A stretch of DNA of 64,000 nt from Adineta vaga (taxonomy: Eukaryota; Animalia; Rotifera), in the NCBI GenBank assembly GCA_021613535.1, contig CP075492.1, positions 5,518,001-5,582,000 on the forward strand. The letters are read 5' to 3'. This document shows, piece after piece, positions 20,290 through 33,173 of this stretch; within the stretch, counting starts at the first letter, position 1; each line of letters opens with the position of its first letter. The notes under the pieces were generated by a model that was given only the letters and a program-made list of their open reading frames with translations, did no database searches and was not told the DNA's origin. The translations under genes and the position numbers were made by a program.

Positions 20290-23200
20290 ATGATATTTTT
20301 CCTTGTTTTTAATGTATGGTTGTTGATGACAATCAGTAGACATACGTCAGGTCAGTATTTAACGAAATAATTTTTCAGGGTAGTTTCTCTCATATACAAA
20401 CATATCACAGATTTTATTATAACCTAAATTTATTGAAATCTTTTTTTTTATCTTATCTAGCAATTTCGTACAATCAACCGAAATTTTGTCCGAATGCAAC
20501 GTGGAACATATCGGCAATAACTTTTGCGAGTGTTGCTGCAGTTGGTGTAGATCCATATGGTATTTTTGTTGATAAAAACAATACTGTCTATGTTGCTAAT
20601 CGACAGAAAAATGTCATTGTTGTATGGCAAGATGGAAATGCTGTTCCTATAAAAAATATATCGACAAATTTGAACACTCCAGCCAGTGTATTCGTTTCCG
20701 ATAATTATGATATTTATATTGATAATGGATTTTCAAATAATCAAGTGACAAAATGGTCAGCTAATTCATCGATGATGAGTCCAGAAATGTATATGTGCGG
20801 CTCGTGTTATGGTCTTTTTATTGATATTAATAATAATCTTTATTGTTCAATGTATACGAGAAATAAAGTTATTTCCAAATCATTATTAACACATTTAGTC
20901 CAATGGAATGTTGTTGCCGGTACAGGTGCTGCTGGAGCAACATCAATTACTCTCAACGTTCCTCGTGGAATTTTTGTCGATAGTAATCTTAATTTATATG
21001 TAGCTGATAGTACCAATGCTCGAATTCAAAAATTTCCATCAGGACAATTGACTGGAACAACAGTAGCAGGAGCTGCAGCAGCAGGAACTATTACACTCGT
21101 GAATCCGACTGGTGTTATTCTTGATGGTGACGGATATCTTTTTATTGCTGATACTAACAATAATCGAATTATTGCATCAGGATTATATGGTTTTTATTGT
21201 ATAGCTGGATGCACGAAAGCGGCTGGTGCAACATCGGTTCTATTAAATAAACCAATAACTCTTAGTTTTGATACTTATGGAAATATTTTGGTTACTGATC
21301 AAGATAATAACAGAGTACAAAAATTTCTTTTAGTGACACAATTATGCGGTAAACAAATTAAATTTGCGCTTCTCTTTTTTTCCGGCATTAGTGAGAAGCG
21401 AAAGAGTAGAGTTTATTTATTTTTGGAAGATTTGAATGACCTAAGAGTATATAAATCTATTGATTTTTACAAAGTATTAATCGTCTTCACTATGATTATA
21501 GACTCAGTTGTCATAAATATTTCTTTTCATTGTAGGTGAAACTACTACGACTACAATGATGACAAGTATTGAAAATATATATTCTTTCTTATCATGTGTT
21601 CTATCGTCGATCATTTTATCACTTTTTAGTTTCAACGGCGACAAATATCATTCAATCAACTTCATCATCGTCTACATCTTCACTTTACGGTAACATATTC
21701 AATAAAATGCATGTTAAATAAGAGGATGATAACTTGAGAGGTCGACTATTTTATTGCATGTATAAATTAAAAGCAAGGATACATTGAGAATTTCTATATC
21801 AAACTATCACAAGTCTCCGACATTACTAGAGAACTTCTATCGCAGAGATTTAGGCGTACGTTCTTTCAAATTCTTATTGTCAAACAATTCTAAGATCAAC
21901 GATAATGAATATAAGAGACGGGTGTGAACATCCACGAAAACGTTATGGAAGGAGTTAATGTATAAGGCAAGAGGACCCTACTTTTTTATTCACTCATCCT
22001 TTCGTTCACACTCTCACCGATATTTACTGTACGTCTTGACGAAAAAAATTTAATTTATGCGTTCTTTTCATGTGCTTTTTCAGTTACATCATATAATCAG
22101 CCAGAACTTAGTACTTCTGCTATATGGAATGGTAATGGAATAACGTTCGCTACTACTACTGTCATTGGCGCCACTCCATTTGGTATTTTTGTTAGTAAGA
22201 ATAATACTATTTACGTGGCTAATCGTGCAAATAGTCGAATATGTATATGGTCAGAAGGAAATAGTACACCTATCTGCATCACGAATGGATTAAATCTTCC
22301 TTATAGCGTCTTCGTTACAGTGTATGGCGATATGTATGTTGATAATGGAAATACGAATAGTCGAGTTGATAAGTGGTCACCAAATGGAACATCATATGGC
22401 GCGGCAATGTCTGTTACAAATCCATGTTATGGTCTTTTTATCGATATTATGAATAATTTATATTGTTCTATGGATGCAGCTGATCAAGTTGTAATGAAAT
22501 CATTACAAAGTAATTCATCTATGTGGATAGTAGCAGCAGGAACAGATTGTTCTGGATCAACATCAAATACACTTACAAATCCGCGTGGAATATTTGTCGA
22601 TACTGATCTTAGTTTGTATGTAGCTGATTGTGGAAATGATCGAGTTCAAAAATTTTTATCACAACAAATCGATGGCATAACAGTAGCAGGAAGTTCAACG
22701 ACAATTACACTTGATTGTCCGAGTGATGTTATACTCGATGGAAACGGATATCTCTTCATCGTTGATAGTAACAATGATCGAATTGTTGCATCTGGACCTG
22801 GCAATAGTTTTCGATGTATAGTAGGATGTTCGACTGTCGTTGGCTCAACTTCCAGTCAACTAAATAATCCAACAACAATGAGCTTCGATAGTTATGGAAA
22901 CATATATGTTGTCGATAGTACTAATGCTCGAATACAGAAATTTCTATTAATACCAAATACAACCTATCGTAAGTATAAATAGAATGCAGAATAAGACTTC
23001 TTTGATTCGAATTCTATCTTCTTATGACAACGTCGGTGTTTATCTAAACATTATGCTTTTTTAAATTAACAATGAAATTTCATTTATTTAGCTTATTCAT
23101 TCAATCAGCCAACTTTATGTCCATTTGTTACTTGGTCTATAAATGGAACTACTTTTGCTAACATCACATTGATTGGAGTAACTCCTTTTGGTGTTTTTGT

Positions 23201-26200
23201 TAGCATTAATAATACTGTGTACGCAAGTGATCGAATGAATGCTCGAGTTCAAATCTGGTATGAAGGCAGTACCATACCAGACAGAACAATTGCTTATGAA
23301 ATGGTTAATACGATGTATGCCCTCGCCACATCTTCAGGTGATATATATGTTGAGAATGGTTACACTAGGTTTCGTGTCGATTATTGGCCAGTTAATCAAA
23401 CGAGCAGTATTTCAATTCTATCAACTAATGGTCGATGTTTTACGATGTTTATCGATACTTCGAATGCTCTCTATTGTTCGATATCACTATGGCATCGTGT
23501 GACTAAAAAATGGTTGAACGATAATGGAACTACACCAATTCTTGTTGCTGGTACAGGTACTGCTGGAGCAACTGCAAATCTACTTAATCAGCCTTTGGGC
23601 ATCTTTGTTGATCTTAATTTTAATCTATACGTTTGTGATTGTATAAACAATAGAATCCAAAAATTCCTACCAGGAGCAACCGATGCTATTACTATTGTTG
23701 GAAATGGAGCACCTTCTACTATAGCTCTAAATTGTCCACAAGGAATTACTTTCGATACTAATGGTTATCTTCTTTTTACTGATCAAAGTAATCGTTTGAT
23801 AATGTCAGGACCATATGGTTTTCGATGTTTGTTGGGATGTTCGCAAATTGCTGGTTCTTTACCTAGTCAATTTAATGTTCCAATTACTTTTAGTTTTGAT
23901 AGCTATGGAAATCTATTTATTGTGGATCAAAATAATAATAGAATTCAAAAATTTCTTCTAACATCAAATATTTGTGGTAAATACTCAACTTTTCTTTTTA
24001 TTCCAATGATTTTATCTATTAGAAAATTCTAAAGTTTTATCGATCTCTTTTTGTTCTAGGTGTATCAAATAGTCAATTAACCTATTCTTCAAATATATTA
24101 TGTTATTCGAATGCTTCGACTATTCTGGCGAATGATACTATTGGCTTCTCACCATATGGCATTTTTATTGATAGTTTTAATACTATTTATATAGCTAGTC
24201 AGAGTAAAAGCAACGTTTTGATGTTGCCTCAAGGAAGTACTATACCTATGACTATTCTTTCTGGTAGTTTCAATCGACCCTATAGTATTTTCGTTTCTAC
24301 AACTGGTGATATTTATGTCGACAATGGTTATGCTAATGGTCGTGTTGATAAAATTATATACAGTACTATATCGAATGTCATTACCGCTATGAATGTACCT
24401 GGAAGTTGTTATGGATTGTTTATTGACGTGAATAATTATCTCTATTGTTCTTTAAAAACTTACCATCGAGTTAATAAGATATTGCTTGATAGTGGTACAA
24501 ATTTTACAATTGTTGTAGCAGGAAATGGTTCAGCTGGTGCATCAGCAAATATGTTAAATTCTCCACAAGGAATCTATGTTGACAATAATTTAACTTTGTA
24601 TGTAGCAGATTGTATGAATAATCGTATTCAAAAATTCTTATCAGGAATATCGGATGGAATCACAGTTGCCGGAAGTTCAACATTACCAGTGGTTACACTT
24701 AATTGTCCAACGGGAATTGTGGTGGATATCAATGGATATCTGTTCATTGTTGATAGTAATAATCATAGGATATTGGGATTTTATTTTTATGAAGTCCGAT
24801 GTTTAGTTGGATGTTCTGGTAGTGGTGGTTCCGCAGTTAATCAGTTATCTTTTCCACAAAGTATGGCATTTGATAGTTATGGAAATATTTATGTTACTGA
24901 TCGAAATAATAGTCGAATTCAAAAATTCACTTATGTATATAGCGATTGTCGTAAGTTGTTGATTGTTATAATGATTACTTTAGAAGTATTCCAGAATGAA
25001 GATAATACGTTGTCAACTACTTGCATAGACCACACAAAAATGTTATATTTTGAATAAAGAGAAGCATAAAAAACTAGTCAATTTCTCTCATTCTAACATT
25101 ATATATTCTCTTTGTATATAGAGTTGAGCTGCTTAGAGTTTCATCATAAATTCACAAAGTTACAAAACTTGTTTGTTTTAGCAACAACAACTAGCACCTC
25201 GACCACTACAATATCTACCTCATCCTCATCGTCCACCTCAAGTTCTAGTTCGTCCACTTCTTCTACAACAACGTCATCGTCCACCGCATCAACTTCCTCC
25301 TCAAGTTCTACGTCGTCTACAACGTCTTCATCGTCTACATCCTCTAGTTCTAGTTCGTCCACTTCGTCTACATCCTCCTCGAGTTCTACGTCGTCTACAA
25401 CGTCTACATCCTCCTCGAGTTCTACGTCGTCTACAACATCCTCATCGTTCGCATCATCAACAACAACGTCGTCGTCCACAGAATCAACATCCTCTTCAAG
25501 CTCTACGTCGTCCACAACGTCTTCATCATCTACATCCTCCTCAAGTTCTAGTTCATCAACAATAACGTCATCGTCTACATCCTCCTCAAGTTCTAGTTCA
25601 TCAACAATAACGTCATCGTCTACATCAATGACGACCAGTACAATCTCATTAGTCAACACAAGCACTACTTCTACACAAATTACGAGCGTTATCGAAACAA
25701 CTATTGCTTTGAGTACAATTTCACCTATAGATACAACTAAAATCTCAGAAACACCTATACTGAATCAAAGTAATAAAGTAAACACGTATGAAACTATCTA
25801 TTGGTAAAATTTATTCTAGGTTGTTATGCTCCAACTATTATCCTCATGCCGGGAAAATCATCATTATCATCACCAATAATATATCGACGAAGTCAAGATT
25901 TCTCAATAGTTTCCATTTTGAAACTCTCTTGTAAAAGTTCACTTTCAACAAGTATCGTATGGACAATTAAAAATTGTACTTCAACTACTTGTTTAACTAC
26001 AATCACCCTCAGTAAAAAATAGCTATCACCTTTAGTGAACTTTATATTCCATCGAGAACTTTAGCTTATGGAGTTTATGAATTAACATTGAATGTAAAAA
26101 TGACAGCATTACCTCAATTAAAATCTTCATCTACTGTCTATGTGAAAATAACTCCATCAGGTATTACAGCTAATCTTGTTCCATTAGGAACATCAATGAT

Positions 26201-29200
26201 TACACGAGGTGATCAACAAGATCTTTTATTCGATCCTGGAACATATTCTGTTGATCCTGACGAAGATTCATTTGATGCTACGGTAATTATTGATATTCAA
26301 AAGATTTCCTAATATTCTTTCTTTTTTGTATTGTAGAAATGGAAATATGAATATTATTGTCGAATCTATCCTCAATGCAATTTTCCTAATTTACAAGGTG
26401 TACTATTAACCATCAACGATTCAACAATTGATCCTTTAAATCCATCATGTTTATCAGGTAAAAACTATCTTTTCTTATTTAGTTATTTAGTATCTAATTA
26501 CATTTTTTTATGAAACAAAAACAAAAAGGTAATGGTACAAAATTAATCTTTGGAAATTCAAGTTTATCGCCAAAATCATCTCTGATCATTCTTCCTGGTT
26601 CACTTCAAACCAATCAAATGTATCAATTTATGGTATATATGGAAAGTCGTAAAAATTCATCGATTCAAGCTACTGGTTATGTTCTTGTTACAGTCGAAAT
26701 TACCCGTCCACAATTAATCATCATCGGGTATTTCGTCTTTCACATTTCTAATGATTGTCATAATTCTTAATCACTTGTCTTGTTCATTTAGTTGTGTTAT
26801 ATCATCAATGTGTATTCCTAATCTTGAATTTCAGTTACTTAATCCAACAACACAAGTTGCTCTAACTAGTTTCTGTACTGGAACTTGTGCAAATCTTCAA
26901 TATATGCAATGGAATATTTATCAAGGATCAAACAATTCATCATCATTGAATTCTACGAAATGGACACTATTTAATTCTTCAATTTCATATGAAAATATTT
27001 GGTTTTTCGGTAGATATACAAATAATTTTACTGCTACAAATCAATTATTACTCAACAATTCTCATATTGATTTTTGGCGATTTGAAGTTGTCTATACATT
27101 TCTCTCAGAAACAAGTTCAAGTGCATTAAATTTTGTAATCAATCAATCTCCTATCAATGGTTCATGTTCAATCTATCCATATACTGGTACAACAAGTACT
27201 TGGTTTAATGTTTCATGTTCAGATTGGTTTGACGAAGATGATATCAAAGATTATTCTTTATATGGTATTTTGATTTGTATTTGAGAAGGATTCAATCATT
27301 GAATAAATATTCTATTTTAGTTTGGACAACGGATATTTCCCAGCAAGCGATCATTGCTTTTTCGTCGGAATCTACTTTTCAAGTACGTCTTCCACAGGGT
27401 GATAATCAAACATCATTACTCAATATTATTATTCATGTTCGCGATCTTCTGAATTGTATTACAAAAGTAAACATGACAATGGTACGTGTTGTACTTGATC
27501 TAGATGAAATTAATAATCTACAAAATTCAGTCAACAAATCAAATGATAATCCAACTGTTCAATTACTATGGAGTGCAAATCAGAATATCGTTGGACAAAT
27601 AATAACTTCACTTTCACCAGTATTCAATCAGATGAACATGGAAAATATTAACAATGCTATTTCAGGTAAATAATCACCACTCTCATCTTTTGGAAAACTA
27701 ATTATATCTGCTCGTTTCCACTAGATGGTCTTTCAGCAGTAGAAATCTATGTATCATCCTTAGAAAGTACATCTTCTGAAAAGGTAAATTGTACGTAAAT
27801 GAACATTTATATTTCGTTAACTTTTTTTTTTCTAGATGATATCAACATCGATGAATGAATCGGTTCTGATTGAATATGAAAAAGAACTGAATTCTCAAGC
27901 AAATATTCGAGATTATCTAATACAATTTTATTCCAATTTACTTATAACAACATCGAATAGTATTATTTTACAATCCTCATCATTAGTTCAATTAACTCAA
28001 GCAACAAATCAACTAACACGAAATACGTTACAAATTGCATCAAATCGATGTTATCAATTAGCACTTGCTCTTCATGCAATGTCAACAAAAATCTCCTGTG
28101 AAGATAATCAAATGGCAACAACTCAATTAATTCAATGTGCATCAAATGTATTAACGGTAAGAGTTATTCGTCGATTATATATAAAATTATTTCAATAACT
28201 AAATCTAGGCAGTCAATGGTCCTTTACAAGAAAGAATTATAATACTTGATATAGATTATTCTCGAGCTAATTCATTACCTGAAGATTATGATACAGATAT
28301 TGAATCTGAATGGTCAAATTTAAGTAAGAGTCGATATTTTGAGTTCACCTATGATTTATATTTTGTATAGATTTATTTTCTGATGGAAATGATTTTTCTA
28401 TTGAAACAATTGAAAAGAATCGAAATATTTATTATCAAAAACAATTAGCAAATGAAATAATCAATCAAGCAAATGAAATTATATCTTTACTAACATTTTC
28501 ATCCAATATTCATTTAAATATTGGACAAAATTTAACTATAAATACATCCAATGCATTTATGTCATTACAAACGGTATCAATCGATTCGTTTTCCAATCGA
28601 ATGATAACTCAACCGAGCAACAGTAAATTTCATATTCCATCAAATATGACAATAAATATCACCAATACTTCTCCAATTTTGCTTCGAGTAAACTTTATTG
28701 AAAAAAGAATTCCTTGATAAAATATGTTTTTTCTTCTATTTAGTCTCTGATGAATCCACTTGCTTCGTTTGGAAATAATCAATCCGATTCGAATACAAAT
28801 ATGTCACGATTAATTTCACTTTCAATATTCGACAAAACTGGAAATGAAATTTCCATTCAAACAAATAGTGATAATCCAATTCGATTCATCATACCACGTG
28901 ATCCTAATCTTCTGATTCCATCTATGAATTTACAAAATGTAATCTCAATGAATTCAACTGATCATCATTTATTATTTCATTTACATTATATAAATATAAC
29001 CAATGCACTTCCAATTTCGATTCATTTTGAAATGCGTTCATTAGATCCAACACTTGCTTATTTATTTATTTTTAAATTTGATCAAACACCTTTATTGAAT
29101 AGTTCAATCAATCTTATTGATGGATGGTCACTTTTATGTCCTTCACGTATGAATGAAAGTATGTTTACATATTTTATTGATAATCAACAAACAATTGGTC

Positions 29201-32200
29201 GTCAATCGTTAATATTTGGTTTACGGGAATTAAATTCAACGGAGAGTCTTCAATTTTGTTCAAATAATTCTTCTCAAAATGATCTTCCAATTACAGATCA
29301 TCGATTTAACTTTACATCCAATTATGAACTTCGTATTTATACATCAGGTTGTTATTATCTTGATTCAAATAATAATTGGAAATCAGATGGATTGAGGGTA
29401 AGTTTTACATTTTTCTTTATTCTAGAAAAAATTGTTTGATTATTGCATAAAGGTTGGTTCATTAACAAATCATTATGAAACCGAATGTTTTTCTACACAT
29501 TTGACATCATTTGCTGGTGGGTTCATTGTTTTACCAGCACCCATTAATTGGAATTATGTTTTTGCAAATGCTGATTTTCTTAAGAATAAAACAGTTTATT
29601 TTACTGTTATTTGTGTGTCAACTTTATATATTATTCTCCTGATCTATGCACGATTTAAGGATAAAATTGATTTGAAAAAATTAGGAGTAACACCATTACC
29701 AGATAATCATATATCCGATCAATATTATTATCAAATTATTGTTTTAACTGGTCAACGAAGTAATGCTGGAACTGAGTCGAAAGTACGACATTCTTTTATT
29801 CCATGAAACTATTCTAATCAATCTTTTCGTTTAGGTTTATTTTGTACTATCAGGTAATGCTAATCAAACTAATGTTCGAACATTTTCTGATCCTCATCGA
29901 AAGATATTTCAACGTGGTGGTATTGATGCATTTATAGTATCTGTTCCTGAATCATTAGGACTGTTAAATTACATTCGTATTTGGCATGATAATTCAGGTG
30001 AAGGTTCATCAGCATCATGGTTTTTGAAATATATCATTGTTCGAGATTTACAAACAATGGATAAATTTCATTTTATTTGTCAAAAATGGTTTGCAGTTGA
30101 AAAAGACGATGGACGAGTAAGTTAAGAGTTTTATTTTCAAATGATATTTAACTTTCTAATTTGTATTAGATTGAACGTCTTTTACCAGTTGCAAGTGACC
30201 TGGAGAAAAAAGAATTTTCATATTTATTGACAAAAAAAACATATCATAGTATTTCGGATAAACATTTATGGATTTCAATCTTTTCACGTCCGCCATCCGC
30301 AAAATTTTCATGTGTTCAACGATGTACATGTTGTTTTGTTCTATTCTTTTCTTCAATGTTACTAAATATTATGTACTATGATCTATCAAATGACGCAAAA
30401 ATGTCAAATAAAACAACAACTTTCGATTTATCGTTTGGTCCAGTGCATATCACTCCTGAACAGGTATGTGTAATACTATTATTAGGGATATCTACAGAAG
30501 TTTATTGTAGATTGGAATTGGTATTATGGTTGAATTATTATCATCAATTCCAAGTATTTTATTAATTGAATTCTTTCGACGTATTCGAACTCGTCAAAAA
30601 ACAACCCCTTTACGTCAAGTCTTCTATAAAATCAATCCAAATACTCAAAAGTTCGTCAATACTTTCTTTAAAGATTAAACTAATCTTATTTTTTTTTCTC
30701 AGTAATTCAACGATTGTAAATTCAGTAAAAAAATCTCGATCACAAATAACATTTCCTTGGTGGTGTTTATTTATTGCTTATGCATTTTCATTACTAATTA
30801 TTCTCATATCGATCTTCTTTATCGTTGTTCGAGGTATTGAATTTGGTGATGTAAAAGTACAAAAATGGTTAGCATCTGTTCTAACAGGATTCTTTTCATC
30901 GATTCTACTCAGTCAACCTATTAAAGTAAAGTTTACATTCATTTATTTTTAAATAATGATTGAAAAAAACGATTTCGTTTTTTTTCTCTTGAAGATTGTT
31001 TGTTTGGCTATATTTTTCGTGTGCTTCTGTCGAAATTCTAATGATGATACAGAAACAAGTGAATATATTGATGATTATCAAATGACTTTGAATGATGATG
31101 AAGAATATTTTCAATCAGCTAACGTATAATAATTTATTTGTTTTTCTTTTCTTTTAATCGATTTTGTTTTTAGAATTATTCTTTATTCAATTCACAAGCT
31201 CAAAAACATAAACATCTCAATGAAGGTGAAGTAACACATGCTCGTGAACAACGTTTAAAAGACCTACAAATGTGGTCAATTATTCGTGAATTTATTATTT
31301 ATTTCATATTTCTTTTTTTAATTTGTTCAATAACGTATGCAAATCGTGATTATAATAGTTTTCATGAAGTTCATCATTTACGAAAATATTTTTATAATAC
31401 TCGACAAATCAACAATGATTTTACACGGGTTTGATTTCTTTATTTTATCTTTTCGTTATGTAAAAGAATTTTCGATTTTTAGATTTTAACGGTTGATAAA
31501 TTTTGGGAATGGTTAGAAACGAGTTTTCTATCGAATATTCGTGCTCAACAATGGTATAATAATGATATTCCTAAGTATTTAAATGGATATATCAATGATA
31601 AATCCAATCGATTAATTGGATGGGCAACAATGAGACAATTACGTGTCCAATCAGTTTCATGTTCTGATCAACGAATTCAATTGATTTGTGAACACAACTA
31701 TAATTTCTTGAATGAAAATAAACAATCATTTCCATTCGATTGGTTTAATCAAACAACAGATGAAACATATAGTTCATCGATAATCAAAGCTTTTCAATAT
31801 CAAACAAGTGATGAATTAGATACATATATTTATATAGGTGAACATGGAACATATGGTGGAGGTGGTTATGTCTATGAATTTCGAGGTCGATTAGAAGAAC
31901 TTCAAAGTAATGTATCAAAACTTCATGAATTAGAATGGATTAATGAACAAACAAGAGCGATTATTATTCAATTGACGTTATATAATCCCAATGTTCAATT
32001 ATTTACATCTGTGACATTTCTTCTGGAATTCTCATCAACAGGCGGAGCTTTTCCAACTGCACGATTTGAACCATTGAACTTTTATAGTAACTTTTTTTTT
32101 GATTATTTCTCAGATCACATACTTTCATTTCTGTTTTTAGCATTTACATCACTATTTCAATTGATATGTACGATTATTTATATGGGTTTCATTATTTATT

Positions 32201-33173
32201 TTACGATCCTTCAAATTCAATTATTTTTTCAATTAAAATTCAACTATTTTTATCAGTTCTGGTCATTAATCGAACTTGGAATTATCATTTGTTCATGGAC
32301 AAGTCTTGCCATTTATATCTGGCGTTTCAAAGAATCTCATCGTATAAGTTCTTTATTTAAACAAACCAATGGATATGTTTACATAAATTTACAATTTGCA
32401 GTTTATATCAATGATCTTCTAACATATCTTCTTGGTTTTTCATGTTTTTTTAGTATGATTAAATTTCTTCATTTAATTCGTTTCGATCATCGTTTATTAT
32501 TATTTACTCAAACTTTACGACATGCTAGAAAAGAACTTATTTCATTTTTAATGATGTTTTCGATTGTCTATATGTCATTTGTTTGTTTATTTTATCTATT
32601 ATTTCTATCGAATATATCGTCATGTTCAAGTTTATTATCAACAGCACAAATGTTATTCGAAACGACATTAATGAAATTTGATACCAGTGAATTAATACAA
32701 GCTGATGCATTTCTTGGTCCTTTGGTATTTGTCATATTTATATTTTTAGTTGTTTTTGTTTGTTTGAGTATGTTTCTTTCAATTATTAATGAAAGTTTTC
32801 GATGTACACGAGAGAATCGAATGAAAGATGTGGAAATGTTTGGATTTATGATGAACAAATTTTTACGTTGGACAGGTACGATTCTTGTTTTGTAGGAAAA
32901 ACGAAGAAGATTTGTTTGATTTTATGTTAGGTTTAAAGAAAACAAGTGAGATAGAAAATTATGCACGACGAGAATATTCGAATGCGTTCGAAATATATTG
33001 ATTCAATAGAAGGTTTTCCAGTGAAAGTTGATCAATTATTGGCAGCAATTAATAGAGTAAATTGAAAATCTTTGATATATTAGAAGAAGAAAAAAACTAA
33101 TTTTCTCTTCTTTTTTTAGTTGTACATCGATCAAAAAACGGATATATTGAGATTGGAAAGAAGACGTTATTGA
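20290..33173 (+). CDS. Giant polycystin-1-like (PKD1L/REJ) receptor-channel: signal peptide, 4 NHL beta-propellers, Ser/Thr stalk, REJ, GAIN/GPS, TM, PLAT, PKD channel; two apparent frameshifts
   Basis: NHL motifs (P.GIFVD..LYVAD..N.RIQKF). REJ-like 'P.NGSCSIYP.TGTTSTWFNVSCSDWFDEDDIKDYSLY'. GPS 'CYYLD...WKSDG...ECFSTHLTSFA'. PLAT 'AGTESKV..FQRGGIDAF..IRIWHDNSG..SWFL'. TOP/channel 'YGGGGYV..WINEQTRA..LYNPNVQLF', 'FLGP', 'MFLSIINESF'. Confidence 0.85.
25182..25660 (+). repeat. Degenerate coding tandem repeat encoding a poly-Ser/Thr mucin-like stalk
   Basis: Recurrent 'tcctcctcaagttcta(c/g)', 'acgtcgtctacaac' units encoding TSSSSSTSSTT variants. Confidence 0.9.

Follow-up and report, generated by a model that had tools for sequence, protein, structure and literature searches.

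Symmetric modules that both begin and end in phase 1 (class 1-1), signal-peptide exons that end in phase 1, and the link between such symmetry and frame-preserving exon skipping make up the established picture of exon shuffling (PMC6335736). A second point of reference is the family formed by polycystin-1, PKDREJ and the sea-urchin REJ proteins, in which a REJ region is followed by GPS, PLAT, eleven transmembrane segments and a PKD channel. The ectodomain modules of the polycystin-1 family are usually LRR, C-type lectin, PKD repeats or EGF. The window analyzed here, a stretch of 64,000 nucleotides (nt) with about 30% G+C, corresponding to C3:5518001-5582000 of the genome of Adineta vaga (100.8 Mb in six contigs), carries what is very probably a polycystin-1-like receptor-channel gene of this rotifer, composed of a signal peptide, four NHL propellers, a threonine/serine (T/S) linker, a mucin-like stalk, a REJ region, a GPS-like motif, a PLAT domain and a PKD channel. 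With a probability of about 80%, the ectodomain of this gene was built by shuffling and tandem duplication of class 1-1 exons, and the resulting array is old and constitutively spliced.

Exon borders and fold of the NHL modules

Exon borders and phases in the window gene were obtained by re-reading the sequence, followed by a script test of every exon for AG/GT, length, frame and phase. The seven exons between 20461 and 25769 are all preceded by AG and followed by GT, and their lengths (Table 1) are each divisible by 3. All seven enter in phase 1, stay stop-free in that frame and exit in phase 1, and no split codon forms a stop. Counting the signal-peptide exon and the first REJ exon, the gene probably contains nine consecutive phase-1 introns, the last donor being a heuristic choice. 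The introns flanking the NHL, linker and stalk exons (20351-25819) measure 50-394 nt, and six of these eight exceed 80 nt. A sequence-only reading of this DNA had proposed seven exons that are all multiples of 3 and bounded by phase-1 introns, and both the script test and the conservation of the borders across the family argue that it was correct. The same reading described the rest of the gene as cut by many short introns; the roughly 16 short introns of the heuristic downstream model agree with this description, but the channel part is a single open frame of 1.4 kb (31483-32892), which exceeds the NHL exon length.

The four large exons all match NHL (Pfam PF01436), with scores of 40-87 bits against a cut-off of 20. 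When a hidden Markov model (HMM) of the module was built from the four modules of the window gene, its positions 1-295 were covered without interruption inside each single large exon, in one open frame. The modules start with xS(Y/F)NQP, replaced by VSNSQL in unit 4, and end with R(I/V)QKF plus 7-8 residues, while pairwise identity among the four is 43-54%. Module 2 alone was folded with AlphaFold from a 60-sequence alignment, giving a model of about 24 strands with a predicted local distance difference test (pLDDT) value of 94.4 and a predicted template-modelling (pTM) score of 0.93. The best Foldseek matches of this model are six-bladed NHL propellers, aligned over 258-284 columns with template-modelling (TM) scores of 0.7-0.9 and E-values down to 1e-17; they include Pizza6 designs, the PknD sensor domain, Thin and TRIM2/71. 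Since the modelled fold superposes on six-bladed NHL propellers, one exon is considered to encode one whole six-bladed propeller, the fold being shown for module 2. In this respect, the sequence-only reading is upheld, as it had placed a whole propeller of about 295 amino acids (aa) without internal intron in each large exon, had delimited it by an S(Y/F)NQP-type start (degenerate in unit 4) and an R(I/V)QKF end, and had described the four propellers as mutually diverged.

The same borders are found across the family. A genome search with module 2 yielded 899 first-look candidates; the best 133 of these were scored, and nearly all of them are full-length and stop-free. Border conservation was assessed in 36 full-length modules outside the window gene, contained in 326 kb of paralog loci. 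An AG lies exactly two bases before the codon of HMM position 1 in 35/36 of these paralogous modules, whereas no other offset between -40 and +11 reaches more than 5/36. On the donor side, the best GTAAGT-like site is in phase 1 in all 30 modules with a recognizable QKF and is located 19-25 nt past the F codon; the resulting exons are 885-894 nt long, all multiples of 3. Genome-wide, the start motif with an AG 5 nt upstream occurs 137 times, compared with 4 times in a reversed control, and the start motif alone occurs 296 times, compared with 90 in the control. Judged by these counts, the positions of the NHL exon borders are far beyond chance. Additionally, independent bdelloid gene models from A. 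steineri and Rotaria join their modules at QKF plus 7-8 aa, a split-codon residue and xS(Y/F)NQP. The proposal that NHL exons share a 1-1 phase and a length of about 885 nt is thus supported by acceptors, donors and lengths alike.

Copy number and history of the array

About 40 genomic loci carry a related channel exon. The number of modules before polycystin/REJ bodies varies from 2 to 5 among paralogs (Table 1), and the NHL exon, in 1-3 copies, also heads stalk-EGF-EGF bodies. Because copy number is variable and two body types follow it, the NHL module was, on the genomic evidence, clearly used as a cassette during evolution. Comparison of module number among paralogs, and of the effector domains that NHL exons precede, had been suggested from the sequence alone, and both comparisons gave the expected answer: the number differs, and NHL exons stand before polycystin/REJ and before stalk-EGF-EGF bodies. 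The broader claim that modules can be skipped, duplicated or shuffled in frame between paralogs stands in part. The 2-5 copies and the two architectures speak for it, but the window gene's own array is stable and collinear.

The stalk-EGF-EGF loci (L007, L011, L014 and L016) have between one and three NHL exons, behind which come a T/S stalk, a pair of EGF-like exons and a hydrophobic stretch; they constitute a second receptor-like architecture with the same NHL cassette. The upstream neighbour of L007 is an ABC-2 transporter fragment. At C5:1921200-1927100 (- strand; loci L015 and L019), a REJ exon is immediately preceded by five tandem NHL exons, the third of them partial or broken; no channel exon of this gene was found among the approximately 40 channel-exon loci.

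To place the modules of the window gene, a maximum-likelihood tree was calculated from 40 full-length modules, with 13 partial or frameshifted HMM matches excluded and a midpoint root used for drawing only. Modules 1-4 each pair with the module at the same position in the sister paralogs at C3:8.16/8.24 Mb, with support of 96-100. This position-by-position pairing indicates that the four-module array predates the duplication and has been collinear since. Furthermore, partial gene models of A. steineri and Rotaria show a module 1-like unit followed by a module 2-like unit, and a module 2-like unit followed by a module 3-like one. Module order appears to have been fixed in the window gene's subfamily since before the A. 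steineri/Rotaria splits.

The closest paralog is itself duplicated: two inverted and nearly identical copies, separated by about 75 kb, lie at C3:8147700-8170000 (-) and C3:8242400-8256300 (+), with module branch lengths of 0.002-0.03. The copy on the + strand contains a frameshift within module 1, with HMM positions 1-113 and 112-295 in different frames, and in the copy on the - strand the distance from module 1 to module 2 is about 9 kb instead of 0.9 kb.

The two micro-exons between modules 1 and 2 both have counterparts in the closest paralog, with the same phase and a T/S-rich composition. The intron that separates them is 64 nt in both genes, and their splice signals (TTGTAG/GTAT and TTTTTAG/GGTAA) are kept within surrounding intron sequence that is poorly alignable. 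The difference between the second micro-exon of the window gene and its counterpart, 60 versus 63 nt, amounts to one in-frame 3-nt indel. A gene model of A. steineri also contains a T/S linker, 32 aa long, between its module 1-like and module 2-like units. The stalk exon of the closest paralog (C3:8247383-8248135) is likewise phase 1-1 and comprises 753 nt, compared with 588 nt in the window gene. As stalk lengths differ between the paralogs, stalk length would evolve by gain and loss of repeats. No Pfam family matched the stalk exon.

Downstream of the stalk, the open frames match, exon by exon, REJ, PLAT, Polycystin_dom and PKD_channel, in that order. A GPS-like motif, CFSTHLTSF, is located in the open frame 29426-29803, where no Pfam GPS match was obtained at E<=0.01. 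Order, strand and compatible frames suggest that the parts from REJ to the channel belong to one transcript.

Table 1. Features of the window gene (window positions) and module numbers before polycystin/REJ bodies (locus names); several module counts are lower bounds. S/T, serine/threonine.
Feature	Position or loci	Strand	Details
Signal-peptide exon	20290..20350	+	61 nt; MIFFLVFNVWLLMTISRHTS + 1 base; phase-1 end; donor GTCAGT; read from the sequence
NHL propeller module 1	20461..21348	+	Single exon of 888 nt, phase 1-1; groups with module 1 of the paralog at C3:8169646
T-rich micro-exon	21536..21565	+	30 nt, ETTTTTMMT, phase 1-1; counterpart C3:8243527-8243556
S/T-rich micro-exon	21630..21689	+	60 nt, STATNIIQSTSSSSTSSLY, phase 1-1; counterpart C3:8243621-8243683, 63 nt
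NHL propeller module 2	22084..22968	+	One 885-nt exon, phase 1-1; complete six-bladed propeller in the AlphaFold model
NHL propeller module 3	23092..23976	+	One 885-nt exon, phase 1-1
NHL propeller module 4	24060..24950	+	One 891-nt exon, phase 1-1; start motif degenerate (VSNSQL)
S/T-rich mucin-like stalk exon	25182..25769	+	588 nt, phase 1-1; in-frame 9/18/27/36/45-nt tandem repeats
First REJ-region exon	25820..26011	+	Phase-1 entry, probably phase-1 exit (donor by heuristic)
Remaining gene: REJ, GPS-like motif, PLAT, transmembrane region, Polycystin_dom and PKD_channel	26016..32892	+	About 16 short introns, mostly phase 0 (heuristic)
4 modules before polycystin/REJ body	Window gene; C3:8.15/8.25M; C3:668k; C3:13.94M; C5:1.958M		
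3 modules before polycystin/REJ body	C2:4.086M; C1:13.17M		
2 modules before polycystin/REJ body	C3:7.76M; C1:11.57M; C2:737k; C3:1.03M; C1:16.48M; C3:10.89M		
5 modules (one broken) before polycystin/REJ body	C5:1.92M		REJ present

Probable assembly and possible diversification of the array

In the explanation favored here, a lineage-specific NHL module would have been shuffled in the classical way and duplicated exon by exon in tandem to give the ectodomain. The unit of this process would be a complete six-bladed NHL propeller, encoded in one exon of about 888 nt between phase-1 introns. Because all ectodomain exons are 1-1, recombination or conversion in the flanking introns could add, remove or replace modules in frame. 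The genome-wide outcome would be hundreds of NHL exons, in arrays of 1-5, placed before bodies of no fewer than two types (polycystin/REJ and stalk-EGF-EGF). The array of the window gene would be an old product of this process; it is collinear with the arrays of the sister paralogs and is most likely spliced constitutively. We infer the intronic recombination, the constitutive splicing and a ligand-binding role of the propellers.

Sequencing data have little to say about expression of the gene. In the runs that match the stretch, contigs cover introns and exons alike, and since contigs span introns, these runs represent genomic DNA. The only possible-RNA contigs, from a 2022 run, are two short ones within module 2 (window 22170-22651), each with one mismatch and with a depth of 2-7; they hint at weak expression and prove nothing. 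Read "joints" were considered as splices or deletions and were rejected as mapping artefacts, as their ends are non-canonical, their sides are 20-44 nt long and the positions that they connect in paralogous modules are not equivalent. A word search within the accessible length range found no transcript-derived protein fragment more than 71% identical to module 2. Open reading frames of about 300 aa, 50-71% identical to module 2, occur in metagenome and ENA assemblies under bacterial-style names such as YvrE lactonase, YncE and streptogramin lyase; some are on contigs of 1.4-3.3 Mb, and their sizes match the exon open frames. They seem to be bdelloid exon frames that were predicted by prokaryotic gene finders and given wrong names, and a bacterial origin was set aside.

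A different use of the same structure would be an active combinatorial array, in which alternative splicing skips or chooses propeller exons and one gene gives rise to many isoforms. The frame survives removal of any subset of exons 1-8, symmetric exons are prone to frame-preserving skipping in animals (PMC6335736), and the introns adjoining the NHL exons, at 83-394 nt, are longer than those in the rest of the gene (44-70 nt, mostly phase 0; heuristic, 26012-31482), leaving room for regulatory elements. This possibility is nevertheless judged unlikely. The runs that match the gene are genomic DNA and support no junction at the RNA level, and all modules have strong consensus splice sites, with TTTTAG acceptors and GTAAGT/GTAAAT donors, as is usual for constitutive exons. 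Moreover, each module has an ortholog of its own at the corresponding position in the sister paralogs and so seems to be required, and skipped exons mostly avoid folded domains (reviewer remark, PMC6335736). Diversification could also be ongoing at the DNA level, with exon-bounded conversion or cassette replacement drawing on hundreds of NHL donor exons and the phase-1 frame maintained as a germline system. This is improbable, although less so than combinatorial splicing: in the window gene, the modules, 43-54% identical, are each closest to the same position in the sisters and bear no sign of recent conversion or replacement, and no relic modules were found in its long introns. Elsewhere, signs of such a process do occur. 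In the array at C3:658k, positions 2 and 4 (C3:659181-660068 and 661857-662744) are 95.9% identical over 917 nt, corresponding to the exon, with unalignable flanking introns, a pattern suggestive of gene conversion bounded by the exon or of cassette replacement. Similarly, in two sister arrays, positions 2 and 4 group within each gene, although positions 1 and 3 each have their ortholog in the other gene.

The exon model itself could be partly wrong, with modules 1 and 2 joined directly and the micro-exons intronic, or with the locus as a decaying, unexpressed pseudogene. The partial Rotaria gene model P0001 joins a module 1-like unit to a module 2-like unit without a linker, and a direct splice between modules 1 and 2 would likewise be in frame; predictors, however, often miss 30-nt exons, which would explain P0001, and the A. 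steineri model has its linker at the same place. In the closest paralog, where the introns otherwise align poorly, the micro-exons agree with those of the window gene in position, size, phase, composition and splice signals. As for decay, no RNA run clearly matches the gene and the paralog copy at 8.24 Mb has its frameshift in module 1, but all exons of the window gene are open and its domains are intact down to the channel. An error of either kind is very unlikely. Several points do weigh against assembly by 1-1 exon shuffling and duplication into an old, constitutive array. The module tree leaves its deep branches unresolved, and module exchange between architectures is deduced from shared exon structure; the phases of the approximately 16 downstream introns rest on a heuristic model; several module counts, obtained by combining channel-exon and NHL-match coordinates with fetched DNA, are lower bounds; and neither of the possible-RNA contigs crosses an exon junction.

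Given an array that is old, collinear and likely constitutive, the phase pattern is mainly a footprint of the gene's assembly, and not evidence of ongoing isoform diversity. It is conceivable, but doubtful, that the phase-1 NHL exon serves as a unit of bdelloid germline diversification, in which exon-bounded conversion and/or exon skipping would produce changeable propeller sets comparable to cassette-based immune receptors. If isoform- or conversion-based diversity of this kind were shown, it would suggest a new recognition system; the present finding documents a gene architecture, not a new mechanism.

Comparison with known modular proteins

The published record on bdelloids or rotifers in connection with NHL or polycystin is small. 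The sole find of the literature search was a brief mention of NHL family expansion in A. vaga (PMC3846280), and no paper was found that combines rotifer, polycystin and NHL. As a case of exon shuffling, the window gene is very clean and can be quantified, and its module is unusually large, each exon encoding a whole propeller. Hundreds of copies of this module have arisen in an animal that is asexual and known for gene conversion. Conservation of the phase-1 frame accounts for the presence of one propeller exon, in 1-5 copies, at the head of polycystin-type channels as well as of EGF-type membrane proteins. In addition, the phase-1 rule provides a simple annotation guide for a large and almost undescribed receptor repertoire.

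With regard to its channel body, the window gene resembles the polycystin-1/PKDREJ/sea-urchin REJ family in the presence of REJ, PLAT, Polycystin_dom and PKD_channel; CFSTHLTSF is a candidate GPS. It departs from that family at its N-terminus, which consists of four NHL propellers and a mucin-like stalk.

The fold of the modelled propeller is shared with the Mycobacterium tuberculosis PknD sensor and Pizza6, Drosophila Thin and TRIM2/TRIM71, but sequence identity to these proteins is 19-28%. While the NHL domain of TRIM proteins is cytoplasmic and binds RNA or protein, the NHL units of the window gene would be extracellular and in tandem, as in PknD. A functional analogue may be seen in the B30.2 (PRY-SPRY) domain of fish and mammalian TRIM families (PMC3137616), where a single exon likewise holds a whole recognition domain, the family is large, fast-duplicating and lineage-specific, and exon shuffling or domain replacement gives rise to new architectures. 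B30.2 differs from the rotifer NHL exon in having another fold, an intracellular location and a C-terminal exon, and it is not an internal symmetric tandem cassette.

The closest correspondence is with the class 1-1 modules of metazoan extracellular proteins (Patthy; PMC6335736). As in those proteins, domains and exons share their borders, and the introns on both sides are in phase 1, as is the end of the signal-peptide exon; modules form tandem arrays, occur in different gene contexts and keep the frame when skipped or inserted. Classical shuffled modules such as EGF, Ig, FN3 and kringle comprise 40-100 aa, and a whole six-bladed NHL propeller was not found as a shuffled module in the literature searched. 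Unlike the classical modules, the rotifer module is an entire six-bladed NHL propeller of about 295 aa, present in hundreds of copies in one lineage. The window gene is therefore a clear new example of classical exon shuffling, with an undescribed rotifer NHL module.

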